Shown: positions 28,201-62,851, counted from the first letter of the stretch. The stretch is DNA of 64,000 nt from Macrostomum hystrix (GCA_950097015.1 CATNEN010000025.1:8680001-8744000), one strand, 5' to 3'. Notes: generated from the sequence alone by a model not told the origin. Made by a program: numbers and translations.

Positions 28201-31200
28201 GTTACCTGACTCATTTCAGTTACCTGACACATTTCAGTGACCTGACTCATTTCAGTTACCTGACACATTTCAGTTACCTGACTCATTTCAGTGACCTGAC
28301 ACATTTCAGTTACCTGACTCATTTCAGTGACCTGACACATTTCAGTTACCTGACTCATTTCAGTGACCTGACACATTTCAGTTACCTGACTCATTTCAGT
28401 GACCTGACACATTTCAGTTACCTGACTCATTTCAGTGACCTGACACAGTTCAGTTACCTGACTCATTTCAGTTACCTGACTCATTTCAGTGACCTGACTC
28501 ATTTCAGTGACCTGACACAGTTCAGTTACCTGACACATTTCAGTTACCTGACTCATTTCAGTGACCTGACTCATTTCAGTGACCCGACTCATTTCAGTGA
28601 CCTAAAACATTTCAGTGACCTAAAACATTTCAGTTACCTGACTCATTTCAGTGACCTGACTCATTTCAGTGACCTGACACAGTTCAGTTACCTGACTCAT
28701 TTCAGTTACCTGACACATTTCAGTGACCTGACTCATTTCAGTGACCTGACACATTTCAGTTACCTGACTCATTTCAGTGACCTGACACATTTCAGTTACC
28801 TGACTCATTTCAGTGACCTGACACATTTCAGTTACCTGACTCATTTCAGTGACCTGACACAGTTCAGTTACCTGACTCATTTCAGTGACCTGACACATTT
28901 CAGTTACCTGACTCATTTCAGTGACCTGACACATTTCAGTTACCTGACTCATTTCAGTGACCTGACACATTTCAGTTACCTGACTCATTTCAGTGACCTG
29001 ACACAGTTCAGTTACCTGACTCATTTCAGTTACCTGACTCATTTCAGTGACCTGACTCATTTCAGTGACCTGACACAGTTCAGTTACCTGACACATTTCA
29101 GTTACCTGACTCATTTCAGTGACCTGACTCATTTCAGTGACCTGACTCATTTCAGTTACCTGACTCATTTCAGTGACCTGACTCATTTCAGTGACCTGAC
29201 ACATTTCAGTTACCTGACTCATTTCAGTGACCTGACACATTTCAGTTACCTGACTCATTTCAGTGACCTGACACAGTTCAGTTACCTGACTCATTTCAGT
29301 GACCTGACTCATTTCAGTGACCTGACACAGTTCAGTTACCTGACACATTTCAGTTACCTGACTCATTTCAGTGACCTGACTCATTTCAGTTACCTGACTC
29401 ATTTCAGTGACCTGACACAGTTCAGTTACCTGACACATTTCAGTTACCTGACTCATTTCAGTGACCTGACTCATTTCAGTGACCTGGCTCATTTCAGTGA
29501 CCTAAAACATTTCAGTGACCTAAAACATTTCAGTTACCTGACTCATTTCAGTGACCTGACACATTTCAGTTACCTGACTCATTTCAGTGACCTGACTCAT
29601 TTCAGTGACCTGACACAGTTCAGTTACCTGACTCATTTCAGTGACCTGACTCAGTTCAGTTACCTGACTCATTTCAGTGACCTGACACAGTTCAGTTACC
29701 TGACTCATTTCAGTGACCTGACACAGTTCAGTTTCAGTTCTCAAAACTCAGTTATCATTAGTTATAACTTCAGTTATCATTACCAAAAATTCAGTTAATG
29801 GATTTTGACGGATACATCGGCCCAATACAATGCAGAACGAACGAAGAGTGTAAAATACTCACTGATTAAAAATATTCTTTGATAATTTCTCCTTTAATAT
29901 ATAGTGCACTGGGAGCGCCGACAGTAGCAATAAAAGTAAAACTAGAGTAGTACGCATTCGTATAAACCTTGGAGCTTGCACTCAGTAAGAATCCGAAATC
30001 TTATGAAATAAATTTGCATGTAATAAATGAGATTGCTCTCTTGAAAGCACTGCGTTAATCCCCGTGATTTCTGCGTCAGTTTTTGGCTGCATCGACCTAT
30101 GCCCTAAGCGGCATTCAGAAAGCCAATATTAATTCAAGAAGACAGAAGACACTCACAGAAGACACTCACAGAAGACACTCACAGAAGACACTCACAGAAG
30201 ACACTCACATAAAACACTCACAGAAGACACTCACAGAAGACACTCGCTGAAGTCATTTACAGAAGACACTCACAGAAGACACTCACAGAAGACACTCACA
30301 GAAGACACTCACAGAAGACACTCACAGAAGACACTCACATAAAACACTCACAGAAGACACTCACAGAAGACACTCGCTGAAGTCATTTACAGAAGACACT
30401 CACAGAAGACACTCACAGAAGACACTCACAGAAGACACTCACAGAAGACACTCACAGAAGACACTCACAGAAGACACTCACATAAAACACTCACAGAAGA
30501 CACTCACAGAAGACACTCGCTGAAGTCATTTACAGAAGACACTCACAGAAGACACTCACAGAAGACACTCACAGAAGACACTCACAGAAGACACTCACAG
30601 AAGACACTCACAGAAGACACTCACAGAAGACACTCACAGAAGACACTCACAGAAGACACTCACAGAAGACACTCACAGAAGACACTCACAGAAGACACTC
30701 ACAGAAGACACTCACAGAAGACACTCACATAAAACACTCACAGAAGACACTCACAGAAGACACTCGCTGAAGTCATTTACAGAAGACACTCACAGAAGAC
30801 ACTTACAGAAGACACTCACAGAAGACACTCACACAAGACACTCACAGAAGACACTCACAGAAGACACTATCAGAAGACACTCACAGAAGACACTCACATA
30901 AAACACTTACAGAAGACACTCGCTGAAGACACTCACAGAAGATACTTACTGGTGAGATAGTTAAGACTAAGACTGAGCCAGGTCGGACTCTCAGAGTTGT
31001 CAAACGCAGGTGCCAAAAATTGCTCACCTTGATGGCCCGCATCTTCCTGCTGACGACCTGAGTAAGCTTCTTGGCCAGGTTCTTCACCTCCTGGGCAGCC
31101 GAGGTGTTCCTGACCCGAAAGGCGCCCTGCTGATGAGCCTTCTCATACTCCTGCGGTTTTGAGAAGCAAAAAAAGTTTCGCGCCTGCTTGGCGGAACAGA

Positions 31201-34200
31201 ACATCCGGGTTTAAGCCTCTTCAACTGGCACAGAAGAGAATTCAAGAGAAGAAAAATAATTCAGATAAGTTTAGCTAGAGCCAATTGGCTATGGGCGAAC
31301 CCGGCATCATGGGGTGGGGAGTTGGCAGGTGTTGAGATTAGAGTTCTTGGCTTAAGAAAAAGTCCTCTGCCATAGTATAGTTCTCTCCGTGATCCCAAGT
31401 CGTGCATTCGCAATTTATTCAGCATAATATTCTGCACAATGCTCGCTTTGCTTAGTATCGATGAAGCGTACGTATTTACAAGCTCGGGCCTATGATTAAT
31501 TCTGCGATTCCACCAATTCAACCGGCATGTGACTTCTAGGAGAGCCGCTGACGGGGCTCGCGATGATGCTAGAAGAGAACGATGACTAGTTAGGTAGAAA
31601 GTGAAGAGAGAACATGAGAAAAGGCATTATAGTGAGAAGCCTTGCAAATTGAGAGCCTGATGACGAACATACCTGCCCAGGTTTGACTTGACAGGGGTCA
31701 GGGCGCTGTGTGACAACAAGACTGACAGTCTCCTGTTATGTGACCACTCTCAGACTCCAGGTGACCCACCCCACGAAAGGTCGGTTCTTCCAAAAGCCAA
31801 AGCTGGGAGAACTGATGAAACGGAGAGCGTGAGAAGTACTAGAAAACTAGAAGGTCTTGAGTGCTGGGCGCCGCGACAGGGATCGATCTGACGAGCGTGC
31901 CACCTCTGCTGGGATGAAACTCGCGGGCCTCTTAACTGCTCCCCTCTCTCACTACCTCACTACCTACTCTAGTTCTCAAGCCTTTCCAAGAGCCCTGTGC
32001 TCCAAGAGGTGCCCATTAGCTGCCCCCAGTGTCGATAATCGATTCGAGTCACCGCTCGCACAGAGGTCCGTAAGGGTGTAAGGGTGGCAGGGTGAAATGT
32101 TAGTGCCTTATCCGGGTCTGACTGCAAAATGTCCGAACTGAAAATAGGAAACCGGATGTGAAGCACTGGCTCTCACCTGTTGCACCCGCAACCAATTGCT
32201 CTGACGGATGAAGGTCTGGCGCAGCAGCTCGGAGCCCGTGGCTGCCTGCTGCCGGAGTCTGCAAATTTTGAAGCAGGAGGGCTGGTTGAAAATGACTAAG
32301 CGCAACCATCATTTAGCTCTCTCATGACAATGAGCTCTCATGACAATGAGCTCTCATGACAATGAGCTCTCATGACAATGAGCTCTCATGACAATGAGCT
32401 CTCATGACAATGAGCTCTCATGACAATGAGCTCTCATGACAATGAGCTCTCATGACAATGAGCTCTCATGACAATGAGCTCTCATGACAATGAGCTCTCA
32501 TGACAATGAGCTCTCATGACAATGAGCTCTCATGACAATGAGCTCTCATGACAATGAGCTCTCATGACAATGAGTTTACTCGTGACAGTCCCGGGACATT
32601 TATAAATTTCTTATGGTTTCCTTTGACTAGGACATTAAGTCATCTACAAATTTCCCCGAACGAAAATGTAGTCCTTTTTTTAATCTATGAATAAATTTCA
32701 GTTTAAGATCAAGCGAACGAGTCGCTGTCATGCCTAATTCGCTTCTCATGTCTAATCCAGGCCGAGAGTTTCCAGAATCAGGTCCACCTTAGCATTTTTC
32801 TCTTGCCAATCGACGAGTATTCCACGAGGAAACTTCAAAATTTGAAGACACAGAACAAAAATAGGCTCCAAATGGAAGCAGTTTCATTGCAGTTTCATTT
32901 TTCAGTAATTAGCATTCAGAAGAATTTCTTGGCATATACATCTGTATTTGAGCATATCATTGCTTTGAGCACACTCCAGAAATTTCCGCCTGTGCGTGTC
33001 TGCATGTGCTCAGCTAGAGCAGATACGGGATCTGCTGCGGCTTGGCAGACACTCAAGCAGCTCAAGCAGCTAGCAGCGGCAGATACGGGGAAAGAGAGCG
33101 AAAGTGAGAAGGACTGGAGAGTGCCACGTGGAATGAGCCTGTTCTTTAAGTGCAAACATCTTTGCCAACCAGCCTCCCACCCGCCGCCTTCCCTGCGACA
33201 TAGCATCGCATCTTTATGAAGGGTGCCGTGTTTGTCAGGAGGCAAGCACCGTAATTGCTGGGGCTTGGCTAAAGATGAATAGCTGGACATGCCGGTAAAT
33301 GGAATACAGTGAAGTAAATGAGATAGGGAGCGCGCGGCAATGTCCCTTTGATGCCCGAGACCAACGCGATACATCGCCATACGCGACTTCTCAAATTCTC
33401 TGCTCATTTTCGCCTCGCAAGAGCCAAGTATGTCGTCTTTGAAAGTAGGTCGAAAAAAGTAAAATATAAATCAATAAATGCATGTGTTAGCGCTTAACCA
33501 CACTCAGTGTTATACTTGTTGCACAACAGGAGTCATCTGTGTTGGTACAGCTTTTGCAACAGCACCAGCCATGAAGTATGAGAGGTTTTTCTGAGAGCTA
33601 CATCAACAAGATTCGGTGTCAAATGACCGCCTAGAAACCACATCCTGATAGTTGCATCAATGAGACTTCGGTGTCAAATGACGCCCTAGCAAATACCTTC
33701 CGAGAGTTACATCAATGAGACTTCGGTGTCAAATGACCCCCTAGCAAATACCTTCCGAGAGTTACATCAATGAGACTTCGGTGTCAAATGGCGCCCTAGC
33801 AAATACCTTCCGAGAGTTACATCAATGAGACTTCGGTGTCAAATGACGCCCTAGCAAATACCTTCCGAGAGTTACATCAATGAGACTTCGGTGTCAAATG
33901 ACGCCCTAGCAAATACCTTCCGAGAGTTACATCAATGAGACTTCGGTGTCAAATGACGCCCTAGCAAATACCTTCCGAGAGTTACATCAATGAGACTTCG
34001 GTGTCAAATGACGCCCTAGCAAATACCTTCCGAGAGTTACATCAATGAGACTTCGGTGTCAAATGACGCCCTAGCAAATACCTTCCGAGAGTTACATCAA
34101 TGAGACTTCGGTGTCAAATGACCCCCTAGCAAATACCTTCCGAGAGTTACATCAATGAGACTTCGGTGTCAAATGGCGCCCTAGCAAATACCTTCCGAGA

Positions 34201-36062
34201 GTTACATCAATGAGACTTCGGTGTCAAATGACGCCCTAGCAAATACCTTCCGAGAGTTACATCAATGAGACTTCGGTGTCAAATGGCGCCCTAGCAAATA
34301 CCTTCCGAGAGTTACATCAATGAGACTTCGGTGTCAAATGACGCCCTAGCAAATACCTTCCGAGAGTTGCATCAATGAGACTTCGGTGTCAAATGACGCC
34401 CTAGCAAATACCTTCCGAGAGTTACATCAATGAGACTTCGGTGTCAAATGACGCCCTAGCAAATACCTTCCGAGAGTTACATCAATGAGACTTCGGTGTC
34501 AAATGACGCCCTAGCAAATACCTTCCGAGAGTTACATCAATGAGACTTCGGTGTCAAATGGCGCCCTAGCAAATACCTTCCGAGAGTTACATCAATGAGA
34601 CTTCGGTGTCAAATGGCGCCCTAGCAAATACCTTCCGAGAGTTACATCAATGAGACTTCGGTGTCAAATGGCGCCCTAGCAAATACCTTCCGAGAGTTAC
34701 ATCAACAAGATTCGGTGTCAAATGACGCCCTAGCAAATACCTTCCGAGAGTTACATCAATGAGACTTCGGTGTCAAATGGCGCCCTAGCAAATACCTTCC
34801 GAGAGTTACATCAATGAGACTTCGGTGTCAAATGGCGCCCTAGCAAATACCTTCCGAGAGTTACATCAATGAGACTTCGGTGTCAAATGGCGCCCTAGCA
34901 AATACCTTCCGAGAGTTACATCAATGAGACTTCGGTGTCAAATGACGCCCTAGCAAATACCTTCCGAGAGTTACATCAATGAGACTTCGGTGTCAAATGG
35001 CGCCCTAGCAAATACCTTCCGAGAGTTACATCAATGAGACTTCGGTGTCAAATGACGCCCTAGCAAATACCTTCCGAGAGTTACATCAATGAGACTTCGG
35101 TGTCAAATGACGCCCTAGCAAATACCTTCCGAGAGTTACATCAATGAGACTTCGGTGTCAAATGACCCCCTAGCAAATACCTTCCGAGAGTTACATCAAT
35201 GAGACTTCGGTGTCAAATGACGCCCTAGCAAATACCTTCCGAGAGTTACATCAATGAGACTTCGGTGTCAAATGACGCCTTAATCTTTGATAGATTTTCA
35301 GTGAGAATAGCCAGAAAGAATAACTATAATTGAAATTTTATGTATTCAACGCAATAGAGAACTTTGCACAGCTTCAACAAACCAAAGCTTGCTGACCTGA
35401 ATTGATAATTCAGCCGCCTGCCAAATGTAAAAACAGCTAAAAAATCGGTCTGTTTTCAATTCACCGGAGAGGCTTCTCAATAACAGAAAGTAGAAAGTTC
35501 TGAATGGAGTTGCAGATTCAGCCGAAGTCATTAATAATATAGCTTGCGCGTAGGTTTTTGTCCCTCGGTCTGCGAGTTCTATTCTCACAACGCTATATCG
35601 GCTTTGGCCCTACGAGAAAGTCGCTGGTCCAAAAATCTCCACTTTTGATTTTAGGGAAGGAAAATCGGTCGCGACCTCCACGCCGGGCAGTTTCCTGGAA
35701 CATGCTCGAGGCCCTTCGACATTCGTGAAATGCTTCTACAGCGAAGCTATGAACAATTTTTCCTACACTTTTTTCGCAGCCCTCCAAATGAATAGCAGTG
35801 CACTTTAGTGTGCAGTCGATAAAGTCTTAATGCATGAGCTACTATGCAAAGTGATAGATGTCTGAATACCGGTGGTATGACTTGCAGGTCTGCAAAAATC
35901 ATGTGAATTGCTGGGAACACTTCATTAAAACTTCATGCGCTGGTGCGATAAAATACTAATTGTGATATTTTCCGTGTCTGCGAGGTCCCGTCCATTGTCA
36001 GCGCTGTTTGAGGCGGAAGAGATAAATATCAGATATGTTCTGAAAGCACTTTATCTGGGCTT

Positions 36063-36140
<78 letters not shown>

Positions 36141-36146
36141 CAGATG

Positions 36147-36184
<38 letters not shown>

Positions 36185-38061
36185 CAGACAGATAGATAGA
36201 TAGATATTGTGTCATAGCCGTGTGCTGCCTGTTGGTCATGACAAACGCATTAGCTTTATAAAAAATAATTTGATGTTTTCTGTCCACTACAAGATGGATA
36301 GCGCGCCAGCAAATGCATTCCCCTTCCCCATCCATGTCGCTATTTATCCCAGCTCTGTATGATCGGCCCCAACAAACTAGGAGTGAAGAGTGTTGGGATC
36401 TTTTGTCCATTATACTTTCTGCTAATCGATATGGGCTAAAACCTGTCCCGCTTTACTGGCCTGCCCTGAGCTCTGGCAGCCTCAACGGACCATTAAACAG
36501 CGGCCCACTTTACGAGGAAGCATAAAATATTTGATGGCCCCCTCAGCTTTTGCTGGTCGCAATGCGGACGCGAAACATGCCGCAGCGCCTCCATAATCCC
36601 CTTTCTGGGCTCGTGTGGAGACATTTCTCGCAAGTGATCCACATAGAAATCACTAGCTGGGCTGATTCAAACAGAAAAAAGATAAATAAATGCATGTGGG
36701 TGAATACTAGCGCACACTAGCTCGAAGACCTGGGCGAAACCGCTCCACAGCCTACGGCAAGGAGGGCGAAATCGTGACCATTCCGCTGGATCCACTGAGC
36801 AAATTCAAATTCAAGCACATCAAAGCTGTCACTAAAAAGTGACACTTGCACCATTCGAGTCTATGAGATTGCGAGGCACAGCTCAGCGTATTTTTTTGTG
36901 CATTCCTTAACTGATTATCGACTCGACAACCAGCTTCGAACTTCTTACAGAGAGTTCGGGAGTTCGAATCGAAATTCTTACCGAGAGGTCGGGAGTTCGA
37001 ATCGACATTCTTACAGAGAGTTCGGGAGTTCGAATCGAAATTCTTACCGAGAGGTCGGGAGTTCGAATCGAAATTCTTACCGAGAGGTCGGGAGTTCGAG
37101 ACGGACTTCTTACTAAGAGGTCGGGAGTTCGAGTCGGACTTGTTACCAAGAGGTCGGGAGCTTGAATCTCAACCTAAGGCAAAGTTGTATCCTTAGCAAG
37201 ACACTTAACTCTCTAGTGCTTCAGTTCATACAGCATCAGCTGGGGTAGAAATTCTGAGTTGGGTGTGGCGGCCTCCTCAGTCCATGGACTTAGCAGTTGT
37301 ACATATCCACGTACTTGCACATTGTGCACATCCTATTCTGCAAGCACTTGAACAAATGTGGTTAAAAATGTTTAAAATAAGAAAATGTCCCTTAGAATTA
37401 AAAATCTGACGGCCTGACTCGTCAAAAAAGCGGAGCGAAATTCTTCATAGAGCCGCTAAAAGACATTTCGTCAGTGACCTCCTCGCCTTCCATTGCCAGG
37501 ACATCCCCTCCCCTCCTTCCTAGTCCGCCCTGGTTCCTGTCTCATTAGGCGCGATTATTATCCGCCGAGGACCGGTGGCGTACGACACCCTCCCTCCCTC
37601 CCTCCTCTGCCTCTGTCTCGCTCATTAAAACTGCATCTCATCTCAGCCGCAAGCGACCAAGTACGAACAGTTCAGCTGTTTGTTGGTCGCTTGAAACTGC
37701 ATGCCCTGTGTTTTTATATAGTTTTAATTGTAGGATTGAAGACTAATATGTATTTCTTGCACATGATTGCGTGTCCGTCAGCCTGCTCAGGGCCTTTTTC
37801 ATTAACAGCTGTTACTACAGTCCCTCTCTCCCCTCCCCTGTCCCCAGTTACAAGATCGACTAATATGTATTGATAACTAACTCGTTGAATTGAAAATTCA
37901 CATGGAACAGTGTGACATGCTGTCTGTTAAAATAGGCATAATTTTTAATCGACTCCAGTCACAATAGCCGCAGACACTCACTCATCGATGGTTGCAGGAC
38001 CAGCTGCCACAGCCGAGAAGGAGCAGCAGACAAAAACAAGCAGCGATTTGAAGCCAGCCAT
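10283..38061 (-). CDS. CACNA2D: Voltage-gated calcium channel auxiliary subunit alpha2delta, complete, 24 exons, ~1256 aa
   Basis: Exons (-): 38061-37982, 32258-32177, 31150-31028, 23804-23609, 23533-23402, 23314-23254, 22913-22863, 22150-22051, 21582-21451, 21372-21283, 20945-20802, 20465-20387, 20183-20134, 18749-18666, 18578-18531, 18150-17998, 17760-17531, 17446-16653, 16527-16300, 16211-16063, 15760-15684, 14569-14288, 11344-11056, 10399-10283. All introns are GT-AG with matching phases (3771 nt). Signal peptide [20 protein letters not shown]; [12 protein letters not shown]; VWA VDTSGSMHG and IFTDG; Cache [13 protein letters not shown]; EYDYQGSC; C-terminal ECG followed by a hydrophobic GPI-type tail. 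The exon 1-2 assignment is the least certain. Confidence 0.93.
10435..11030. repeat. 27-bp minisatellite with higher-order variants, filling the last alpha2delta intron
   Basis: Unit AAAATGTCACTCTCTAAGATTCACTCT. Confidence 0.95.
11385..11915. repeat. 19-bp minisatellite (intronic)
   Basis: Unit CCACCTGTTATCTATCAC(T/G). Confidence 0.95.
13190..13922. repeat. 16-bp purine-rich minisatellite (intronic)
   Basis: Unit GAGAGATGAGACA(C/G)GG. Confidence 0.97.
14610..15655. repeat. ~21-bp minisatellite filling most of an alpha2delta intron
   Basis: Unit TCTGATATTGGTCACTCCACA with variants. Confidence 0.95.
15870..15990 (-). repeat. Dispersed repeat family (AATATTCAACCAATCGCC core), copy 1
   Basis: Reverse-complement similarity to 22230-22440, 48820-49015 and 59365-59525. 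Confidence 0.6.
19243..19560 (+). mobile_element. SINE family 1, near full length
   Basis: Head GGGGTGAGTGGCAGAGCGG (A box), shared body, degenerate ATT tail. Confidence 0.8.
19680..19870 (-). mobile_element. SINE family 1, diverged 5' half, inverted relative to the copy at 19243
   Basis: CATCTGACCTGACTTTTTCATTGTCAG..GTGTACACTC..TGTGCC is the reverse complement of the family body. Confidence 0.6.
22230..22440 (+). repeat. Dispersed repeat family, copy 2
   Basis: AAATATTCAACCAATCGCCATGA..GATGAAACAACTTCCAGAAT..CATCGGCATCG..GAGATATTC is shared with 48880-49015 and 59445-59520. Confidence 0.7.
23040..23185 (-). mobile_element. SINE family 1 fragment
   Basis: GCATGACAAGCCCCCAAAGCCTTCTC..GACCTCACCGCGGAATCGAGCTC matches 56880-56960. 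Confidence 0.65.
24300..24510. repeat. 17-bp degenerate minisatellite
   Basis: Unit CATTGACCTCCTTGGGG. Confidence 0.85.
25455..25625. repeat. 14-bp minisatellite, copy A (~12 units)
   Basis: Unit CAGAAGACACTCAC, the same as 30143-30945. Confidence 0.95.
26398..29735. repeat. 3.3-kb 18-bp satellite with two subfamilies and higher-order structure
   Basis: Units ATCTGACACAATTCA(G/A)CA (~26530-27760) and CCTGAC(T/A)CATTTCAGT(G/T)A (flanks and 28060-29735). A rare CTAAAACAT variant doublet recurs 900 bp apart (28602, 29502). Confidence 0.98.
30143..30945. repeat. 14-bp minisatellite, copy B (~55 units, higher-order blocks)
   Basis: Unit CAGAAGACACTCAC; the variant block CATAAAACAC..CGCTGAAGTCATTTA recurs. 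Confidence 0.97.
32325..32575. repeat. 16-bp minisatellite, ~15 copies
   Basis: Unit TGACAATGAGCTCTCA. Confidence 0.97.
33600..35280. repeat. 55-bp minisatellite, ~30 near-identical copies
   Basis: Unit CATCAATGAGACTTCGGTGTCAAATG(A/G)CGCCCTAGCAAATACCTTCCGAGAGTTA, head to tail with no spacers. Confidence 0.98.
36063..36206. repeat. (GATA)n microsatellite
   Basis: Direct reading. Confidence 0.98.
36941..37300 (+). mobile_element. SINE family 2 copy whose tRNA-like head segment is amplified into seven 33-bp units
   Basis: Units TTCTTAC(C/A)GAGAG(G/T)TCGGGAGTTCGAATCGAAA. The last unit runs into CCTTAGCAAGACACTTAACTCT..TGCTTCAGTTCA, the core seen at 56460-56500 (-). Confidence 0.75.
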
Positions 38062-38802
38062 CGAGGTGTCTCGCAGCTACTCGGCGCTCAGTCTTTCATT
38101 ATGCGCTGGCCAGTCTTCTGAGATTCTCTGGTTCCGTGTTTGCTGTTAAACAATTAAACATCAAACCAATCAAAGCTTGGGCAGGGTTGGAGCTGGGCCT
38201 ACCAGTCGCCAGGGATTGTCGGATAATTATAGCAGCAGCTGGGGGTCTCGGGCCGCCTCTTGGCAACCCTCTCAGCCAATCAGGGCTCTCCTGGCTTCAC
38301 CAAGGACAGCCATTCATGCCTCATCTCCTGCATCAGATTCTCCCAGAATACGCTCTGTGATGTCTGAGTGAGCTGCTCGAAATTAGAGCAAAAAAAAGTG
38401 AAGATGAAGTATCAGCGGAGTGCTCTCAGGCCAGGTCACAATGGTTTTGGCGTCTCAGACATCGAGTTAATCCGTTGAAAAAGAGTCTTCGCAATTCCAT
38501 TCCCAATGGTATTAGCTGAAATCCTATTGAAATGAGAATCCACCCTAATATAGTTGCTATTATTGTCGTTTACCTTTTAGATGAAAAATTCCTATCCTCA
38601 AAATTGACCGATTTCTTATGCCGAGCACAATGAGCACGCTTTACAATGCATTTTTTTAATGTTAATTTTGGTTGAATTGTGATGAAATACAATGCATACA
38701 ATCGAATTTCTGAATACAATGAATTTTTGGATCGCTATTTATATTCACGGCTTTGGCAAAGGTCGCATTCAACTCTGGAAAACAATCCATCGCTAAGAAA
38801 AC

Positions 38803-39330
38803 ACTGAGCACATCATCAGTGAGCAGTCTGTGAGCACACGAGCTCAACATGACCCTGAGATCATCAGTGAGCAGTCTGTGAGCACACGAGCTCAACATGA
38901 CCATGAGATCATCAGTGAGCAGTCTGTGAGCACACGAGCTCAACATGACCATGAGATCATCAGTGAGCAGTCTGTGAGCATACGAGCTCAACATGACCAT
39001 GAGATCATCAGTGAGCAGTCTGTGAGCACACGAGCTCAACATGACCATGAGATCATCAGTGAGCAGTCTGTGAGCACACGAGCTCAACATGACCATGAGA
39101 TCATCAGTGAGCAGTCTGTGAGCACACGAGCTCAACATGACCATGAGATCATCAGTGAGCAGTCTGTGAGCACACGAGCTCAACATGACCATGAGATCAT
39201 CAGTGAGCAGTCTGTGAGCATACGAGCTCAACATGACCATGAGATCATCAGTGAGCAGTCTGTGAGCACACGAGCTCAACATGACCATGAGATCATCAGT
39301 GAGCAGTCTGTGAGCACATGAGCTCAACAT
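38803..39330. repeat. 48-bp minisatellite, ~11 copies
   Basis: Unit GAGCACACGAGCTCAACATGACCATGAGATCATCAGTGAGCAGTCTGT. Confidence 0.97.
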
Positions 39331-40971
39331 CTTTCCATTGTCATGAGATCACCAGTAGGACTTTTGCTGCATCCGTTTCCACACTTGCCCACTCCTCACC
39401 GGTAGAAAAAAATGAGCCACACGAGAGAAAATAATGAGTCGCGTTAGAGGGCCGGCCATAATGCTGGCGAATGTGTGAACCTGGTAATCAGCGAGCTGGA
39501 CTGCCCGTGAGACTGATTGAGAATGAACAGAGAGAAAGTGAGGATGACTTAATGAAAGAAGAATAATGAGAAGAATGAGTATTAAAACCGATCAGGTTTG
39601 ACAGTGCATTTGAGTCGCTTGACTGTCAGCACTCAATCTTCTAGTGTTCGGCTCATATTTGAGCATTGAAGCTACCAATGGGTAGACTACACATTAGAGA
39701 AAAATCGTTAGTCAGGTGAGTTTACCTGCTAATTTATCACAGATTTTTGGCAACCTCCCGGGAAAAGATGACGGTCGCGAGAGGGTTGTGCAAAGCCTTC
39801 AGCCTTTTGTATAATATTACACGGTGAAAACTTCCTGATTATAATGGATTGAGTCTCAATTGCCTCCTGGTTTTTGTTTCTCCTGGCCCTGTTGGCCTAA
39901 CAATAAACTGCCGGGGCAGGGAGGTTCTTATGCTCAATGAAACAGTTTATAATGACTAATCTTATAAAGAATTTTGACATTCTGTCATTTCGAACTCGTA
40001 GAAAACTCCTCTTAATCAATAATGAAAGGCGCCAATCCATTTGCGCCACTAGAAGATCATAATAGCAAAAAACATGAGTTGTTACTATGAGTAGTTAAAT
40101 AGAGACTGAAGTTCATAAAACCTGTTTAAATTGTCGATTCAGTTAGGCAGAAAAATGTAGAATGAACTCGCCCCAGTCAGTTCATTCCTATCTGATGTAT
40201 CGCTGACTGTGATATCACACATTACAGCCAAACATCGATGCCACATCTGCAGCATGAAGCATTCAAGCCTGACCTAAATAAACAGTTGGATATGGCATGT
40301 GATACACCGCCTGTTCAATCGACTAGGCGAATCTATCTGCGCATGCCTGAGGCAGAGGTTGAGGATCTTCAGCTCCGGTACAATGCAACAGAAGTGAAGA
40401 TTCTGTGCTTGAAAGATCGCGACATTCACAGTAGTCGACAGCTTCGAAAATAATTCAATCGTATTATCCTCCTAATCTTGGGATCTATCTGATACTTTCC
40501 TGACTTTGCCTTCCAAGCTTAGCAAAAGTTTCCTTCGCTGTTCTTCAAGCTCTTGGAAATTGGAACCTGGGCGGGTCATCTCGCCTCTTCTTCAGATTTT
40601 CATCAATGATTTGTCAGCGTTCTGTTTTTTTCCTGTTGGCTTTGATCAAATGATATGACAGCAGGGCCAGCTGTCAGGCTACTGTAAAGCAAGCTTGCCA
40701 TAGTCTTCTAGAATGAGGGTCTGCACGAAAAAAAGCCAGCGGCAGTTGGAGTTGCTGAAACCACTCGAAAAAGACTTCTAGTTTTTGTTCTCGAAGCTTT
40801 TACTTTTGTTCAGAGGTTGCACAGTCATGAATGTACTCGTAATTGTGAGTAAGTATTAAATTTGATTCGAATGAAAGAAAAACTACTCGATAATTTTACG
40901 TAAGTTTTGTGTAAAAGACGAAATAATAAATACTTCAAAATAACAGACTACCGACGGTTGATACTATATAG

Positions 40972-42408
40972 ATGCTCAGCAGCGATACCTTCTCAAGGAC
41001 GGAGCTGCCACTGGTCGGGCTAGAATATTCAGTACCTAGTCAGTGGTATCTTCTAAGCTTTGGCGAACCGCTTCAGCCAGGACAAAAGTACCGAATTGAG
41101 ATCACGGACTTTCGGAAGCCGCTTGAGCCCGATCTTCGCGGTCTCTACCTGAGCGTGTACACCGAAGGAGGCAAAAAGCACTACTTGGCTGTCAGTCAGT
41201 TGCAGTCAACGGACGCTAGGAAAACGTTCCCGTGTTTCGACGAGCCTGCCTTTAAAGCACGTTTCGATGTCAGCTTGGTGCATAGGAAGGATTTCCGAGC
41301 CATCTCCAACATGGAGTCCCGACTAATTCGTCCCTTGGCGACACCTTCTAGGTGGTTCCCGAACGCAGATACAAGTCAGGATTGGGTCGAAGAGCAATTC
41401 GAGACCACACCAATCATGTCCACCTATCTACTGGCATTCATTGTGTCCCAGTTCGAATACAAGCAGAGCAGAGACTCGCGCGGACGCCTCTACCGAAACT
41501 GGGCCCGACCCGAGCTGGTGAACATGTCTGACTATGCCATCACTGCCGTGACCAACATCACCGAGTTCTTCGAGAACTACTTCGATGTACCCTTCCCGCT
41601 CAACAAGACCGATCAGGCGGCCGTGCCAGATTTAATCGCTGCCGGTATGGAGAACTGGGGCCTCATCACCTACCGCGAGAGCCGCCTTCTATTCGACCCC
41701 AAAAAGGATACAACATCCAGCCTGCAGAGCATTGGCAATGTCATCTCTCACGAGGTGGCGCATATGTGGTTCGGCAATCTGGTCACGCCGCAGTGGTGGG
41801 ACGACATTTGGCTCAACGAGGGCTTTGCCACGTTCACTCAAATCCTGGGTGTTCGACAACTTCACCCGGATTGGGACATCGACGCGCAGTTTGTAGTTGA
41901 CTCGCAGCTGTCTGCCTTCCACGCCGACTCCAAGGGCTCCAGCCATCCGATCTACATGGAGGTACACAATCCTAGCCAAATAACCGAAATTTTTGACACC
42001 ATCACATACAGGAAAGGCGCAGCGGTGCTGCGCATGCTTTACTATTTTGTCGGCGACCGCGTGTTTCGTCGCGCTATCGGAGCCTATCTGAAGCAAAATA
42101 GCTTTGCGAGTACCTTCCACACATCACTATACGACAGCCTCACCAAGGAGGCGCAAGCCGACAAGGGAATCAAACTGGACGTTGCAGAGATCATGGACCG
42201 CTGGATCAAGCAAATGGGTCACCCAGTACTGGCCTGCTACCGCGAGCCATGGAGTATCAAACTGCAACAGAGTCACTTCCTCAGCGATTCGAGTCAGCGG
42301 CGGAGTCAAGAACTGACATCGCTTGAATTACTTGACCGCTATCTATTCAAGCATTTCTTGAATTTGTCGAAAGGCTCAACTTGCGCTTCATTATACACTT
42401 GCAAATAA
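40972..42408 (+). CDS. Truncated inverted duplicate of the aminopeptidase N gene (478-aa open frame; coding or pseudogene status unknown)
   Basis: 40983-42301 is the reverse complement of 44523-45841, with only 3 substitutions seen and no indels. It keeps AGMEN, HEVAH..E and the catalytic Tyr and lacks the TM anchor and the C-terminal domain. Confidence 0.85.
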   Translation: MLSSDTFSRTELPLVGLEYSVPSQWYLLSFGEPLQPGQKYRIEITDFRKPLEPDLRGLYLSVYTEGGKKHYLAVSQLQSTDARKTFPCFDEPAFKARFDVSLVHRKDFRAISNMESRLIRPLATPSRWFPNADTSQDWVEEQFETTPIMSTYLLAFIVSQFEYKQSRDSRGRLYRNWARPELVNMSDYAITAVTNITEFFENYFDVPFPLNKTDQAAVPDLIAAGMENWGLITYRESRLLFDPKKDTTSSLQSIGNVISHEVAHMWFGNLVTPQWWDDIWLNEGFATFTQILGVRQLHPDWDIDAQFVVDSQLSAFHADSKGSSHPIYMEVHNPSQITEIFDTITYRKGAAVLRMLYYFVGDRVFRRAIGAYLKQNSFASTFHTSLYDSLTKEAQADKGIKLDVAEIMDRWIKQMGHPVLACYREPWSIKLQQSHFLSDSSQRRSQELTSLELLDRYLFKHFLNLSKGSTCASLYTCK

Positions 42409-42424
42409 ACGAAAATAAAATGAA

Positions 42425-42730
42425 GATCTATCATCCATAAATGAAGCTTTCTAAAATTCTTTGAAGCAGTATGTTTTGAAAGATATATTTAAAGAGCAGA
42501 ATTTGATCTGCTTCCAATAAAAAGTTATCAACATTTTAATGTGAAAAACGCGAAAAGTTCCTATCTCGCTTGTGCATTTTTTCCGAGAAAATCAGCCTTA
42601 AATTTTTTTCCAAGAAGCAAAATGTCTTGCCCTTATTTTTTATGTGGTCCTTGCTTATTAGTACAGCAGACGAAAATCAAAAGCCGAGCATACACAGCTG
42701 CTTCGCTTTTCAACCCACTTGGGCAAAATT
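42425..42730 (+). repeat. Dispersed repeat family, part shared with 48515-48820
   Basis: TCATCCATAAATGAAGCTTTCTA..AAAGAGCAGAATTTGATCTGCTT..AAAGTTATCAACATTTTAATGTGAAAAACGCGAAA occurs at both loci. Confidence 0.85.
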
Positions 42731-43249
42731 TCACTCTATTTGAGCTTCTGAGCTATGGATGCATGTATCAACGGCAAAGTCCAGTTTGATTCGTTAGCAG
42801 TTGTGAAAATTGCGAATGTACTTATCGAATTAATCTTAATTATTAAAGCGTATGAACACAGATTTTTTTCTGATCTGCCCTAGAATGTCGCATTTGTAAT
42901 AAAATATGTTTCTCTGGTTCCAACCTCACCTTCTTGTCCGTCGCACTGCTTCAATAACTGGTTTTAAAGTTACTAAAGTTGGTTCTTTGTTTCACACCTA
43001 TTTTGGGATAAATACACCTCAAAAGCGTCTGTAAATAGTGTCCACAGCGAAATTCAGACGAAATCACTATTACTGGTCGATAAGACTAGAATAGACATCA
43101 TGCCGAAAAAATAGGAGCAAGCTTATAGTTCAAAAAGAGGAAATTTAATCGAAGAAAAAGAAGTCTGCAAAAAGTGAGGCCTTTGATTTCAAGCAGGAAA
43201 AACATTTTACTTTGCAATCAGGCGTTTGCCGGTGGGCGGTGACTGCAGC

Positions 43250-46200
43250 CTAGTTTTCCTGCTGGTCTAGCCATCGGCGCACCACATGCAGATTAGACTC
43301 CATCCAGCGAATGTTGATCCTGACTCCCTCTAGCGACTGGTCCATCGCCCGCTGCGCCGAGCCCAGCTTGTTACGATTCTTCTCCTTGAACTCCTCCATC
43401 TCAGACAGGCGCTGCGGTGTGTTAAACTCATTCAGCAGCGAGATGAAGTAGGAGGTCGCGAACGCACTGGGCACTCGCTCGATGATGAGATCCCAGTTGT
43501 CTCTCAGGTAATCCCACACGATCTGCAGTCCGTTGGCATTGCTCGAGACCACACTAAATACGGAGGCTGCATCCTGGCGTCGAATCTTTTCTTCGTCTAG
43601 AGCGTAGTCCAGATAGCGGTTGAGCAGCCACGGCTGCGGTGAGCAAGCCAGAGCTCGTAGGATGTCGGTGTGCAGGCCCGGGTGCGCCACGGTCTGGCTG
43701 CGCTGGTAGAGCGCGTCCCAGTGAGCCTCGGAGGCCGCCGAGGTGATTCCCTCACACAGAACAACTCTGCGGACGTCTGGTGGCAGATCACCGTAGTAAC
43801 CATCGCTAGCAAACCTTTCAAATAGACGGAGAGCGTCGCGCCGGCAATCAGGCACGCCGTACTGGCAGGCAACTGAAGAAATGAGGGCACGGCGAAGCCG
43901 GCGCATGTGGGAGTCGCTAGGAGCCGTGTCGATGCCCAGATCGGCGTAGGCCGGGGCCAGCAGACGTCGCATGTGTGCGCGGAACGGGCCGTACACTGCG
44001 GAGCTACGATGCAGCATGGAGTGCAAAAGGGACAACTTAGTCATAGCGGCACGCCATGGAGCGTAATGCGTCTCTTTACGCAGGTATCGTGTCATGTTTA
44101 GCGGAATGCTGTAGTCGATAAGGCCAGCCGCTGCAAGGCTGAAGCTATCATCCAGCATTCTGACGCGGTCCTGCGGCATGAACACCTTGTGATCGGTGAT
44201 AAGTTGAGATATGAGGGCACGCCAGTTGTCCCGATCATAGTTGACCCGGTAGAAGCCAGCCGAGCGCAGGTTCAACAGGTACCAATCACCTGGAGCGAGT
44301 GATTTAGCTTCGAAGGTCTGCGACTCATGTCGCATCCATTGTACCAGGCTGGAGACGTCTTCAAGATGAGCTGCTTCTGAAGCGTTGGACTGAGTTATCA
44401 TCGTAATTGGAACAATCCAGGTATAGTTGTACTCAGATACAAACCTGCGTTGAATACAGGGTTTTAAGTTGAGCATATCGACAAATTCAAGCAACGCCTT
44501 GTCAGTTCTTACCTGGCGTCCGGCCGCTGACTCGGATCGCTGAGGAAGTGACTCTGTTGCAGTCTGATACTCCATGGCTCGCGGTAGCAGGCCAGTACTG
44601 GGTGACCCATTTGCTTGATCCAGCGGTCCATGATCTCTGCAACGTCCAGTTTGATTCCCTTGTCGGCTTGCGCCTCCTTGGTGAGGCTGTCGTATAGTGA
44701 TGTGTGGAAGGTACTCGCAAAGCTATTTTGCTTCAGATAGGCTCCGATAGCGCGACGAAACACGCGGTCGCCGACAAAATAGTAAAGCATGCGCAGCACC
44801 GCTGCGCCTTTCCTGTATGTGATGGTGTCAAAAATTTCGGTTATTTGGCTAGGATTGTGTACCTCCATGTAGATCGGATGGCTGGAGCCCTTGGAGTCGG
44901 CGTGGAAGGCAGACAGCTGCGAGTCAACTACAAACTGCGCGTCGATGTCCCAATCCGGGTGAAGTTGTCGAACACCCAGGATTTGAGTGAACGTGGCAAA
45001 GCCCTCGTTGAGCCAAATGTCGTCCCACCACTGCGGCGTGACCAGATTGCCGAACCACATATGCGCCACCTCGTGAGAGATGACATTGCCAATGCTCTGC
45101 AGGCTGGAGGTTGTATCCTTTTTGGGGTCGAATAGAAGGCGGCTCTCGCGGTAGGTGATGAGGCCCCAGTTCTCCATACCGGCAGCGATTAAATCTGGCA
45201 CGGCCGCCTGATCGGTCTTGTTGAGCGGGAAGGGTACATCGAAGTAGTTCTCGAAGAACTCGGTGATGTTGGTCACGGCAGTGATGGCATAGTCAGACAT
45301 GTTCACCAGCTCGGGTCGGGCCCAGTTTCGGTAGAGGCGTCCGCGCGAGTCTCTGCTCTGCTTGTATTCGAACTGGGACACAATGAATGCCAGTAGATAG
45401 GTGGACATGATTGGTGTGGTCTCGAATTGCTCTTCGACCCAATCCTGACTTGTATCTGCGTTCGGGAACCACCTAGAAGGTGTCGCCAAGGGACGAATTA
45501 GTCGGGACTCCATGTTGGAGATGGCTCGGAAATCCTTCCTATGCACCAAGCTGACATCGAAACGTGCTTTAAAGGCAGGCTCGTCGAAACACGGGAACGT
45601 TTTCCTAGCGTCCGTTGACTGCAACTGACTGACAGCCAAGTAGTGCTTTTTGCCTCCTTCGGTGTACACGCTCAGGTAGAGACCGCGAAGATCGGGCTCA
45701 AGCGGCTTCCGAAAGTCCGTGATCTCAATTCGGTACTTTTGTCCTGGCTGAAGCGGTTCGCCAAAGCTTAGAAGATACCACTGACTAGGTACTGAATATT
45801 CTAGCCCGACCAGTGGCAGCTCCGTCCTTGAGAAGGTATCGATAAGACGCACCGTCTCACGAGTGAGGCGAATTCTGTCTGCATGCAGCCGGATAACTTT
45901 GGTTGTATTGGCGACACTTATTGTTATGTTCACACTACCAGAGAAGTAGAAAGCGCTCTCATTGTCGCCATAGATGAATGGCGCCAGAACCAGCTCATAG
46001 TGTGTGGGAAAAACATCGGTTGGCAGGCGCAGATTCTCACCGTAAAAGCTAGATTTCGATGAGGAGTCTCCGGTTGGTTTGGATAAAGATGCGTTGGACG
46101 CAGTGGAAGTGTTTTTCGCATCACCGTCGTAGCAGGCCGCACCTGAGACAGCAAAGAAGATTGCCAGAGCGGCAACTATAATTGCGCAAATCAGAAGAGC

Positions 46201-46386
46201 ACCGACCACGGCCACAGCCGCAAAGCTAATGTAAAAGCCGCGATTTCTCCACGTTTGCGATGGCTGCTGATGATTCGCCTGCTGACCGTCCGAGTCGTCA
46301 GGCCCGGAGGCGGAAACATTGGCGCCGTCTAGGTGGACAACATTGTTTCCATCAGACGACGGTACGTATCGAGCGTAGCCGCCCAT
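43250..46386 (-). CDS. Membrane-anchored M1 zinc metallopeptidase (aminopeptidase N-like), 2 exons, 1022 aa
   Basis: Exons 46386-44513 and 44444-43250; 68-nt intron ag|gtaaga...cgcag|g, phase 2. Type II TM segment (FYISFAAVAVVGALLICAIIVAALAIFF), DARKTFPCFDEPAFKA, AAGMENWG, HEVAHMWFG..WLNEGFA, ITYRKGA, and an ERAP1_C-type C-terminal region ending NIRWM. Confidence 0.96.
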
Positions 46387-48164
46387 TGCTTGCGATTGGT
46401 TTCTCTGCGTTTTTCTGTACTAAAATGCTAACGCTGCTGTTTTAGTATTTGCTGCTTGTTGTAACCTTTCGGGTGAATAAATTTTTTCAGATCTGGCTTT
46501 GAAAATGAAGCCTGAAAAATCTCGAGATCCAACTTAGACGCGCAGAAGGGATTTAGATAGCGTCAGGTATCAAGAGGAGTGATATCCATGGGCTGTATCT
46601 GATCTTTGTACACCGAGAGCACCGACCAATGCCGCGCTATACTAGTCCGCATTGGCTGCGTGGGGAGTAAATGAGCTCTTGGAGGCAGACCAGGACAGGA
46701 AGATGAATAAACTGCGCGACTGGAATGGGAATCCTTAACCCAACAGGGATGAGAGGCCTATGAGAGGAATGGGGCATTGGCCTGTGCCCTGCACCCCAAT
46801 ACATCGGCGCTTTAACTTCAGTGCCTCGGGGCTGGTGGAATCTAATTTGACTTGTGTCTTTCCGCGCCTCTCCTGCTGACCCAGACTTTTGTGGACATGC
46901 GCAGAAAATGCCAGAAATTTAAATTTGTCCGTCCGGCTGTGGGACTTCGGCTGCGCACACCTTGCCAGTGGGGGCTTTTTAAGTTTCATGCACAAAATAA
47001 ATAAAAACTACGTATTTCTCGACTATTTCGTCTCTCCAAGCGTCCTTCCTTCTTTGCAAGGAAGCAATGTCCATAAAGTTTCCGCAGGGCAAAACCTATA
47101 TGGCTGTAAAGAAACTATTGAGCAGTTGAACTAGAAAAATCAATGGTCATCGATTCTGTTGCCCGTCTCACTCGCCGGTGTCCTGCCAATGCCTCTCACC
47201 AGAGAAGGCTGCTCATACTTTTGACGCGCCTTATAAAATCTGTAATCACATATTGACCGCGAGGATAAGAGCGTTCGACTTTATCTACCCAAGTCATCTC
47301 ACGCCTCGCTTCACTGACTTCATGTGACTTGAAACGCTAGCAATAGGCCAAGGATCTTGGTCACTGACCCACTCGCGTGTCTGAAGTGTGTTCGAAGCTG
47401 CCAAAGATTCGATTTTTAATGAACTGTTCAAGGGGTGCTAATACACAACACGACAAGCAGTGAAAAAACTGAAGCTTCAGAATTGGACCAGAAAGAAAGA
47501 TTTCATTTCTCTCCCTCCCTCCCGCTGTCTCATTTCCGAATCCAGCCTACATTTATACTCGTACTTTATTTCGCATCAAGTCGAAATCTATAAATCTAGG
47601 CCGACTAGAAAAAATGTAGACAGATTCATAAATGCCAGCTGGACGAAATTTCCTGCAATTTTTATTGCTTCCACCTCAGTTTGTTAAAACGAGCCCCCGA
47701 GGCACAAAGTCAGACAGGCACTTTGCATGTCCGCGACAGCTCCGACAGATTCAGTGTGGGTGCGATGGTGAAAATCACTGTCGATGAGGCACAAATTCCC
47801 TCAATTTTCAGTCTCAACTCACATGCAAAAAGATTAGCTGCAAGAGTTTCATATTGAAATATGACGTGACTCGTTTGTAAGGATCACTGACTACTAGGCC
47901 ACACTAGAAGAAGAAGGACAGGACACTTCGTTTCTTGGAAAATTTATTAAAGGCCCGAAATTCACGAAAAATGCCCTTGGCGAGATAATGAACTTTTTAC
48001 GTTTTTCACATTAAAATGTTGATACATGTTTATTGCAAGCAGATCCAGCGCTGTTCTTTTAATATATTTAGCAAAACATGTTGCTTCAAAGAATTTTAGA
48101 AAGCTTCATTTAGGAATTATTTATCTTCAGGAACAGAAATGAAATTGCCAAAATATGTTTAAAA

Positions 48165-48210
48165 TGCCGAAGCTTTTCGTCCTAAGCGGACATCGTCAGG
48201 GTCGATTTAT
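48165..48210 (-). ncRNA. Minimal type I hammerhead ribozyme core
   Basis: Minus strand: CC CTGACGA T GTCC-gctta-GGAC GAAA AGCT TC GG. Invariant CUGAnGA and GAAA boxes, perfect 4-bp stem II, palindromic AAGCTT stem III, UUC cleavage triplet (C17 = 48169). Stem I is truncated to 2 bp. Confidence 0.7.
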
Positions 48211-48475
48211 TGAAAAACGAAAACGCAGGTGTTTAAAGTAGGTTGTTGTACATTGTGAGTTAAAGTCCGATGGACGGGTCAAAAGGCAAACCATGATCAA
48301 GAGGTTGGAGAGGAACGCACACACAACGCAGAGTGAGAGCCCGGCTCATACGTCAGAACACTTGGAGCTGTTGGCTTGCACCGTTCACCGCTAATTGGAC
48401 AGTAAGGTTTGGCTTGAGGGCCTTGATGTACATGGCTTCAAGAATGGTCAGTTTGTAATCTCGTTTTTCAATAAA

Positions 48476-48514
48476 TTGACCCTGACGATGTCCGCTTAGG
48501 AAGAAAAGCTTCGG
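48476..48514 (+). ncRNA. Second, inverted hammerhead core with one stem II mismatch
   Basis: CC CTGACGA T GTCC-gctta-GGAA GAAA AGCT TC GG. Confidence 0.55.
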
Positions 48515-49015
48515 AAGAAGATCATCCATAAATGAAGCTTTCTAATTAAAATTCTTTAAAGCGATATGTTTTGCAAGATATATATTTAAAGAGCAGAATT
48601 TGATCTGCTTGCAAGAAAAAGTTATCAACATTTTAATGTGAAAAACGCGAAATTTTCCTATCTTGCTTGTGCATTTTTCCGGGAAAATCACCCGTAAATA
48701 AATTTTCCAAGAAACAAAGTGTCCCGTCTTTTTTATGTGGTCCTTGCAGTACAGTAGAGTAAAATCAAAGGCTGAGCATACACAGCTGCTTCGCTTTTCA
48801 ACCCATTTGGATGGATGTATCAAAATGAATAACTACGTGGATTATTTCAAATAGGCAAATCTTTCTTTTTTCTGTATCTCCCGAAATATTCAACCTATCG
48901 CCATTAAAATCCAGAAGACGAGATACAATTTTCTGCTTGATCCGATAAAACAAACTTCCAGAATCGCAAACCGTCGGCATCGTCGAGATATTCAACGATT
49001 CTCGTCGCGGTGTCT
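48515..49015 (+). repeat. Dispersed repeat family, longest copy
   Basis: The left part matches 42425-42730 and the right part matches 22290-22430 and 59445-59520. Confidence 0.75.
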
Positions 49016-61960: not shown

Positions 61961-62199
61961 AGACAACCACAAGCCAAGCGCATCAAAGCACTAAAACTTC
62001 TGCTAAATTAGTATTAATTACTGGGGCACCCAGCAGTTGCTGGAAGTGATCAATTCCTAAAAGAGAAACAAGGAACTTATCAAGCTTTTATCGGGTGCAA
62101 ATTGTTCCCATCAATGGGGAAGATGTGCAGCACTTGTTGGACACTTTTGGATCCTGTGTGAGTCTTCAGAGCTTTAGTTCCAGCAACTAAGAGAGAGAG

Positions 62200-62762: not shown

Positions 62763-62851
62763 TAAGATCGAACGTGTTTTAAGATAAGCGCTACAACGCT
62801 TACTAAATCCTGAACCGCCGCCAGATGGCCCTAGTCTACAGTGAGCTGCTT

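Follow-up and report, generated by a model that had tools for sequence, protein, structure and literature searches.

How did a nearly identical inverted copy of part of an aminopeptidase N gene come to lie just downstream of that gene in the flatworm Macrostomum hystrix, and does the copy do anything for the gene? We addressed this question within a 64,000-nt stretch of one strand of the genome (the window; GCA_950097015.1, CATNEN010000025.1:8680001-8744000), in which positions are counted from the first letter. An earlier note, made from the sequence alone, had described the locus as a candidate self-targeting hairpin-RNA locus under arm-to-arm conversion. The account that we consider reasonably probable is a real local inverted partial duplication that had a fold-back or template-switch origin, whose arms were later homogenised by gene conversion, and whose copied part is functionless. 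The structure is known from one published assembly.

The parent is an intact, two-exon aminopeptidase N (M1) gene on the minus strand (43250..46386), as defined by ORFs, Pfam matches and splice sites. Exon 1 (46386-44513) and exon 2 (44444-43250, stop TAG), both on the minus strand, are separated by a 68-nt GT..AG intron (44512-44445), and the M. lignano orthologue runs across the predicted splice junction as expected. The product has 1022 aa, an N-terminal membrane anchor and the M1 domain order, with Peptidase_M1_N (2.4e-37) and Peptidase_M1 (2e-73) encoded by exon 1 and ERAP1_C (5.5e-88) by exon 2, all above Pfam cut-offs. The HEXXH-18-E zinc motif occurs as HEVAH...18...E (residue 438), and the GXMEN exopeptidase motif as AGMEN in place of GAMEN; among 120 homologues, 106 had GAMEN and a single one AGMEN, and paralogues on contig C1 also carry GAMEN. 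In a word-based protein database search the closest protein was from M. lignano (61%) and no M. hystrix protein was matched. None of the nine neighboring ORFs gave a Pfam match above cut-off.

Residues 183-621, which comprise the end of the N-domain and the entire catalytic domain, are encoded by the segment of exon 1 that forms the right arm (44523-45841, minus strand). Its inverted copy, the left arm (40983-42301), has its sense on the plus strand and lies tail to tail with the gene, 0.94 kb past the stop codon. A repeat search and a base-by-base comparison gave arms of 1319 nt with 0 indels, a coordinate sum of 86824 and 1316/1319 identical positions, and tblastn showed that the left arm encodes the same residues at 99.5% aa identity. 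Chance is far from sufficient to explain a 1.3-kb repeat at 99.8% identity. The arms differ at exactly three sites (41715, 42260 and 42289), a count to be read with the caution that short-read polishing may have removed true arm differences; at all three the copy has A/T and the gene G/C. The first is synonymous, whereas at 42260 the gene encodes R and the copy K, and at 42289 the gene encodes P and the copy S. Since this Pro is common to the gene and the M. lignano orthologue (FLSDPSQ), the copy holds the new change. Two of the three mismatches are located within 42 nt of the inner edge, as would be expected for the edge of a conversion tract.

Just outside 40983, identity drops to the random level (~25%), and on the inner side it ends at 42302. 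The spacer between the arms is asymmetric, unique in the genome and 2221 nt long (2083 bp if the remnant described below is counted), and it contains exon 2. These arm limits, the indel-free alignment with its constant sum, the three substitutions and the spacer with exon 2 all agree with the earlier note. The total structure occupies 4.9 kb and has unique sequence on both flanks. The arm sequence has no other occurrence in the 220-Mb assembly, in which the next paralogues are 67% identical. Twenty 10-kb genome pieces (200 kb) contained no further unique near-identical local inverted repeat of at least 150 bp, a sample too small for calling such repeats rare or common. In this sample, only a minisatellite foldback turned up.

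The copy is spanned by a 478-aa ORF on the plus strand (40972..42408; ORF and Pfam searches). It opens with an ATG that lies 11 nt beyond the duplicated segment and directly follows a TAG, and its stop codon overlaps an AATAAA at 42404. As neither the membrane anchor nor any of ERAP1_C is encoded, and the N-domain is short of its first ~70 positions, the ORF probably represents a fragment without function. The copy as a whole is promoter-less, anchor-less and C-terminally truncated, and nothing points to an independent function, from which we infer that it is functionless.

Evidence on the age of the event comes from the inner edge. An 81-bp remnant (42302..42382, plus strand) follows the left arm; it can be aligned to the final 9 nt of exon 1 plus ~47 nt from the start of the 68-nt intron, with 46 matches, 5 mismatches (5/51) and 4 indels. 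The indels are a 1-nt deletion, a 6-nt deletion by which the exon end was lost, a 1-nt insertion that turned the donor GTAAG into GTCAAG and thereby destroyed it, and a 30-nt insertion. Since intron sequence is present in the copy, copying occurred at the DNA level. The earlier claims of a DNA-based duplication and of a diverged, indel-bearing intron remnant without a donor were thus borne out; the insertion in it also exists, but measures 30 nt and not 27 bp. Comparison of 42302-43250 with exon 2 revealed no homology beyond a 32-nt intron match, and a longer original copy is not indicated.

The remnant (5/51 substitutions and 4 indels) is significantly more diverged than the arm (3/1319; Fisher p = 3e-6), although it is only 81 bp long and a scar from an error-prone junction of a young duplication could mimic age. 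Given an intron remnant that is ~10% diverged and has four indels, the event appears older than the arms look, as had been proposed. The same contrast makes arm-to-arm gene conversion, or a single recent conversion, the best reading, with the reservation that so short a remnant could be a junction scar. Arm identity far above the divergence of adjoining sequence is the pattern by which conversion palindromes are recognized, here over a short remnant, and the earlier suggestion of arm homogenisation is supported to that extent.

Next to the remnant, alignment defined a 20-nt filler (42383..42402), and a genome search identified a solo ~254-bp interspersed repeat unit with a 66-nt extension (42403..42722, plus strand). 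The loop-facing end of the unit proper (42403-42656) adjoins the duplicated patch. The family has at least 40 genomic copies (about 80%), commonly arranged in '-'...'+' pairs 0.2-5.6 kb apart. A complete foldback-type copy of it (47908..48810; repeat and genome search) lies 1.5 kb upstream of the ATG of the gene, and the 66-nt extension is shared only with 48745-48810. The most likely course of events is as follows. Repair would start from a break at the repeat unit downstream of the gene; the 3′ end would fold back or switch template and prime in the intron, and ~1.4 kb of the gene (from mid exon 1 to two thirds into the intron) would be copied before the end was rejoined. The result would be an inverted copy and a single-copy spacer of a few kb, which is the signature of a fold-back event. 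Gene conversion would afterwards homogenise the 1319-bp arms and stop at the first indel.

It has been reported that fold-back inverted duplications have spacers of 0.77-70 kb, with a median of 3.4 kb (PMC3907307), and the 2.2-kb spacer falls inside this range. The M. hystrix locus also shares with these duplications (Hermetz et al. 2014, PMC3907307) a non-duplicated spacer of a few kb, and the repeat element at the spacer/inversion junction may be a further resemblance. However, in humans such duplications extend over megabases, are accompanied by terminal deletions and derive from dicentric intermediates (PMC3907307), whereas in M. hystrix synthesis would have stopped after 1.4 kb and the end would have been recaptured. 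At the spacer/inversion junction, which consists of the filler and the repeat unit, microhomology is unreadable owing to the 20 nt of filler. With regard to conversion, the closest parallel is with the human Y palindromes P1-P8, whose arms are >99.7% identical around a unique spacer and owe this identity to intrachromosomal conversion. The arms of those palindromes, however, measure between 10 kb and 1.4 Mb, and each of the two contains complete testis genes, whereas the M. hystrix arms have 1.3 kb and one of them is no more than a gene fragment.

The strongest competing account, which we regard as unlikely but worth weighing, is that the duplication is young and experienced no conversion, and that the 81 bp and the filler are the scar of error-prone, repeatedly aborted repair synthesis, likened to polymerase-theta-type templated insertions. 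Arm divergence of only 0.2% would be consistent with a young age, and substitutions become steeply rarer with distance from the end at which priming would have occurred (5/51, 2/42 and 1/1277 in succession). Short templated inverted insertions at breaks have been documented (PMC11724301), and the 30-nt insertion contains local repeats of a CTTGAATT motif and is followed by the filler. However, no template of at least 11 nt was found in the window either for the insertion (the parent intron itself excepted) or for the filler. In addition, the ~10% substitutions are scattered on both sides of the insertion. Known polymerase error rates are far below this value, which argues against this account.

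That the palindrome is a working genetic device and not a scar, either a self-limiting RNAi loop or a recombination flip-flop, seems improbable to us. In the flip-flop version, the 2.2-kb spacer would be inverted by crossing-over between the arms, and exon 2 would come to lie on the anchor-less copy; the promoter-bearing exon 1 would then end in the remnant, so that the locus could switch between encoding a full-length membrane peptidase and a truncated one. In the RNAi version, occasional skipping of the weak ATTAAA signal could yield a pre-mRNA with a 1.3-kb hairpin, and the resulting siRNAs could cap expression of the gene itself.

This RNAi version corresponds to the self-targeting hairpin-RNA locus of the earlier note. 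Read-through of a weak poly(A) site would form a perfect 1.3-kb stem, siRNAs diced from it would tune the gene's own mRNA, and selection together with conversion would hold the arms identical; we consider this quite improbable. The orientation is right, as had been stated: a minus-strand read-through transcript would contain sense and antisense arms together, the second of them 0.94 kb past the stop. The 1319-bp inverted repeat with 3 mismatches is likewise complementary to the target gene, as an hpRNA locus requires. It is also correct that the gene strand contains no AATAAA from the stop codon as far as the left arm. However, an ATTAAA on the minus strand (43144..43149), 101 nt after the stop codon, is the best candidate for the gene's poly(A) signal, and a second ATTAAA is present on the same strand at 42540-42535. 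The position given before for the latter (42535-42540) was exact, whereas that for the former (43143-43148) was off by one. Apart from the signal 101 nt after the stop, four poly(A)-like hexamers (AGTAAA, CATAAA, ATTAAA and AATATA) precede the arm, and cleavage at any of these sites would separate the arms. Because of these signals, absence of AATAAA is weak evidence, and as the proposed built-in RNAi regulation was based only on this absence, it is unsupported. A hairpin RNA would arise only if transcription ran past the gene's poly(A) signals.

General features of the animals are compatible with such a hairpin: Macrostomum responds strongly to long dsRNA (PMC11075559), small-RNA machinery is present in flatworms (PMC5594548), and in Drosophila hpRNAs derive from inverted target fragments, sometimes beside the parent, e.g., Dsim-hp58 (PMC10317233). 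On the other hand, strong self-silencing would probably be costly for a conserved and intact gene that exists in a single copy; conversion alone accounts for arm identity; and no match to Rfam families, and hence to a known ncRNA family, was found in 36-50 kb. The Drosophila loci resemble the M. hystrix locus in that the inverted repeat derives from a coding-exon fragment near the parent gene, is perfectly complementary to it and is evolutionarily young. However, both of their arms are in a separate non-coding unit, whereas here one arm is the working gene, and for them Dicer-2-dependent siRNAs and target de-repression have been demonstrated (PMC10317233).

With respect to arrangement, the locus also resembles certain plant genes, in which an intact gene and an inverted truncated copy lie tail to tail and read-through would give a hairpin directed at the gene family. 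Rice Lgc1 is a tail-to-tail pair of glutelin genes, one of them truncated, that produces read-through dsRNA, and the Arabidopsis PAI1-PAI4 and soybean CHS inverted repeats are comparable inverted gene copies. For the plant genes, silencing is the observed phenotype and there is documented loss of the terminator or an upstream promoter, whereas the M. hystrix locus has poly(A)-like signals between gene and copy. Mouse oocyte endo-siRNAs have been sequenced, and in this case too a gene-derived inverted repeat could direct siRNAs against its founder gene. Their sources, however, are processed pseudogenes at other loci.

It is very improbable that the left arm, or its placement, is an assembly artefact due to a mis-join or to a PacBio read that was chimeric or folded back. 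The assembly (SR1) was made with canu from PacBio continuous long reads and subsequently purged and polished (PMC10468722), a procedure that leaves room for such an error; in addition, a single assembly shows the structure, and no independent sequence from M. hystrix turned up in the protein database. However, a fold-back read with a missed adapter would give an exact palindrome whose spacer is absent or adapter-sized. Here, the spacer is 2221 bp, asymmetric and unique, and neither the 3 arm differences nor the diverged, indel-bearing remnant could result from technical copying of the same molecule. Moreover, typical long reads exceed the 4.9 kb of the whole structure, which is flanked by unique sequence on both sides. 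The source line was highly inbred and long PacBio reads were used, and Illumina, RNA-seq and Iso-Seq data are reported for M. hystrix along with the PacBio data (PMC10468722). The chimeric read, considered the main alternative in the earlier note, is therefore not a likely source of the palindrome.

Least credible of all is capture of the fragment by a transposon (Pack-type transduplication) with the ~254-bp unit as one terminal repeat. Units of this family mostly come in '-'...'+' pairs, and the fragment does sit at the inner side of a '+' unit, but no partner unit was detected to its left in 36000-40990 (word size 7, E = 1). The left flank occurs only once in the genome, and the fragment, being single-copy, offers no evidence of past movement, whereas captured fragments have two termini and several copies.

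On the structural reading alone, that is, a fold-back duplication with later conversion, the locus is a clean, datable example suggesting that in a flatworm a palindrome bearing a gene can arise through repair of a break beside a foldback-type repeat. Conversion can then hold a dead fragment identical to its live parent, and it also exposes the live gene to mutations that arise in the fragment. If read-through proved true, the locus would be an animal gene that carries its own RNAi trigger and would provide a snapshot of the earliest step in the birth of an hpRNA.

The gene at this locus, with two exons on the minus strand, encodes a predicted M1 aminopeptidase N (43250-46386, 1022 aa). Exon 1, from the ATG at 46386 to 44513, contains the Peptidase_M1_N and Peptidase_M1 domains, and exon 2, from 44444 to the TAG at 43252-43250, contains ERAP1_C, all far over the Pfam cut-offs. 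The 68-nt GT..AG intron (44512-44445) was placed from splice sites and reading frame, and the Macrostomum lignano orthologue matches the proposed junction, reading through it as predicted. The gene product has a hydrophobic anchor at its N-terminus. Family and database searches were run for each exon, the joined-exon protein being used for a frame check and for tblastn against the window only. The closest database relative of the encoded protein was a M. lignano protein (61%), and no independent M. hystrix sequence was found in the protein database search. The exopeptidase motif reads AGMEN in both arms of the inverted repeat described below (45166-45183; 41641-41658 in the copy), in contrast to the canonical GAMEN. 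Among 120 homologues, GAMEN was present in 106 and AGMEN in one, a coral protein; GAMEN also occurs in all three readable aminopeptidase N paralogues on contig C1. At least four paralogues are clustered on this contig (C1:15,357,900-15,514,500, assembly G000), with DNA 67-69% identical to the studied gene.

The repeat finder identified an inverted repeat, 40983-42301 and 44523-45841, with arms of 1319 nt and a spacer of 2221 nt. Base-by-base comparison detected exactly three arm differences (41715, 42260 and 42289) and no indels, in agreement with the arm coordinates, substitutions and lack of indels reported in the earlier note. Outside 40983, identity becomes random at once, and on the inner side it collapses at 42302. 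Searches of the whole M. hystrix SR1 assembly (220,453,370 bases, 42 contigs), in which the window is C25:8,680,001-8,744,000, found no further occurrence of the arm sequence, the nearest paralogues being those of the C1 cluster (67% identical).

The left arm is sense sequence for residues 183-621 on the plus strand, and sits in a 478-aa ORF. This ORF opens 11 nt beyond the duplicated segment, at an ATG immediately preceded by a TAG, and its stop overlaps an AATAAA at 42404. Judged by Pfam domains, the ORF product would be devoid of the membrane anchor, the first ~70 N-domain positions and the entire C-terminal domain. The start and end of this ORF call for no special explanation. Among the arm differences, a single one is synonymous, whereas the other two alter an amino acid (K/R and S/P); each time, G or C in the gene corresponds to A or T in the copy. 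The gene's proline at the S/P site also occurs in M. lignano and in a mollusc, which places the origin of at least this substitution in the copy.

From 42302 to 42382, the copy retains similarity to the terminal part of exon 1 and to ~47 nt of intron sequence. This alignment comprises 46 matched and 5 mismatched positions plus four indels; of the indels, one deletes the last six bases of the exon and another destroys the splice donor. The presence of intron sequence shows that the copy was made from DNA and not mRNA, as previously proposed; the insertion noted in this remnant is also present, with a length of 30 nt rather than 27. The remnant is far more diverged than the arms (3/1319; Fisher p = 3e-6), which indicates either an old duplication whose arms were homogenised or very error-prone formation of the junction. 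Judging from sequence comparison, arm-to-arm gene conversion, suggested in the earlier note, is the probable explanation, homogenisation having halted at the first indel. It is favored because scattered substitutions at ~10% flank the insertion on both sides, more than repair polymerases produce, and because no template for the inserted bases was found in the window. In addition, all but one of the three arm mismatches fall in the 42 nt next to the inner edge, a position that fits the margin of a conversion tract. A recent duplication with an error-prone junction would be a less probable, though serious, alternative.

With regard to origin, we infer that the copy arose by fold-back. The chromosome would have broken near 42402 and its right-hand end been resected; the exposed minus-strand 3′ end would then have folded back, primed in the intron near 44466 and been extended rightwards to 45841 before rejoining to the left flank. 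These steps would yield exactly the observed order and orientation, including the single-copy spacer. Sequenced human fold-back inverted duplications all have a spacer (766-70,466 bp, median 3.4 kb) and their junctions often carry a repeat (PMC3907307), and yeast breaks, too, can acquire short, templated insertions in inverted orientation (PMC11724301). Here, a 20-nt filler (42383-42402) separates the remnant from a solo repeat unit of ~254 bp (42403-42656), which has at least 40 genomic copies at ~80% identity, typically in inverted '-'...'+' pairs 0.2-5.6 kb apart, and is foldback/MITE-like. A break at or within this foldback element is a plausible trigger. The solo unit turns its pair-interior end toward the duplicated patch; however, capture of the fragment by a transposon is unlikely, because no partner unit was found left of the copy (36000-40990), neither the flank left of the copy nor that at the gene's 3′ end recurs in the genome, and the arm sequence is single-copy. 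The repeat family is also represented upstream of the gene, by a complete 0.9-kb element (47908-48810); this element and 42403-42722 alone share an extra 66-nt extension, about 90% identical. On sequence grounds, the two local copies may be related by local duplication, not separate insertions. They differ by ~12%, close to the divergence of the intron remnant.

A selected RNAi function, in which a read-through hairpin would target the gene's own mRNA, is very unlikely. A minus-strand transcript reaching 0.94 kb beyond the stop would hold sense arm, exon 2 and antisense arm. However, the only positive argument of the earlier note, lack of AATAAA, is countered by an ATTAAA (a common variant poly(A) signal in animals) 101 nt past the stop, and by AGTAAA, CATAAA, a second ATTAAA and AATATA before the left arm; the ATTAAA motifs had been recognized, one coordinate being off by one base. 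Cleavage at any of these hexamers would part the arms. In addition, arm identity requires no selection, conversion being sufficient, and an Rfam search of the region found no family. Long dsRNA does silence genes efficiently in Macrostomum (PMC11075559), small-RNA machinery is present in flatworms (PMC5594548), and Drosophila hairpin RNAs (hpRNAs) arise from inverted target fragments, sometimes beside the parent gene (PMC10317233). Incidental low-level siRNA output is a more likely, putative consequence than a selected function.

Also very unlikely is an assembly artefact, such as the chimeric fold-back read considered previously: when a PacBio adapter is missed, the resulting read is an exact palindrome about a single point, whereas the locus has an asymmetric, unique 2.2-kb spacer, real arm differences and a diverged, indel-bearing remnant not producible by a technical copy of one molecule, all within 4.9 kb, below typical long-read length. 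The assembly, from the inbred SR1 line, was built with canu from PacBio data; haplotigs were purged and the sequence was polished with Arrow and Pilon (PMC10468722).

Other repeats were detected nearby. A 48-nt minisatellite (38716-39435, ~15 units, core units 99-100% identical) sits within a 222-aa ORF of the minus strand, for which Pfam gave nothing above cut-off. A 3.3-kb array of period ~18 nt (26398-29733) contains long ORFs, of 571 aa on the minus strand and 473 aa on the plus strand, and is possibly a repetitive-protein gene. The window is unusually minisatellite-rich (8176-8782, 9363-9991, 33589-35282, 59526-60222 and 62197-62767; periods 54-63 nt, units 95-99% identical), several lying inside ORFs. 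The same 13-nt-period repeat occurs in direct orientation at 25434-25629 and 30142-30949, 4.5 kb apart and ~92% identical, and an 88-nt near-perfect inverted repeat (49109-49196/49777-49864, 98.9%; spacer 580 nt) flanks two 102-aa ORFs that mirror each other. A family search of the genome for TROVE yielded two ordinary loci and no near-identical convergent pair. A control sample covering 200 kb of the genome contained no other local inverted copy apart from one minisatellite foldback. One piece of it, L013, has a 233-bp direct repeat (464-696/5180-5412; C25:8,000,464-8,005,412), 100% identical and 4.5 kb apart, which is another very young local duplication.

The locus is probably a further example of fold-back inverted duplication combined with palindrome conversion, and may represent a proto-hpRNA.
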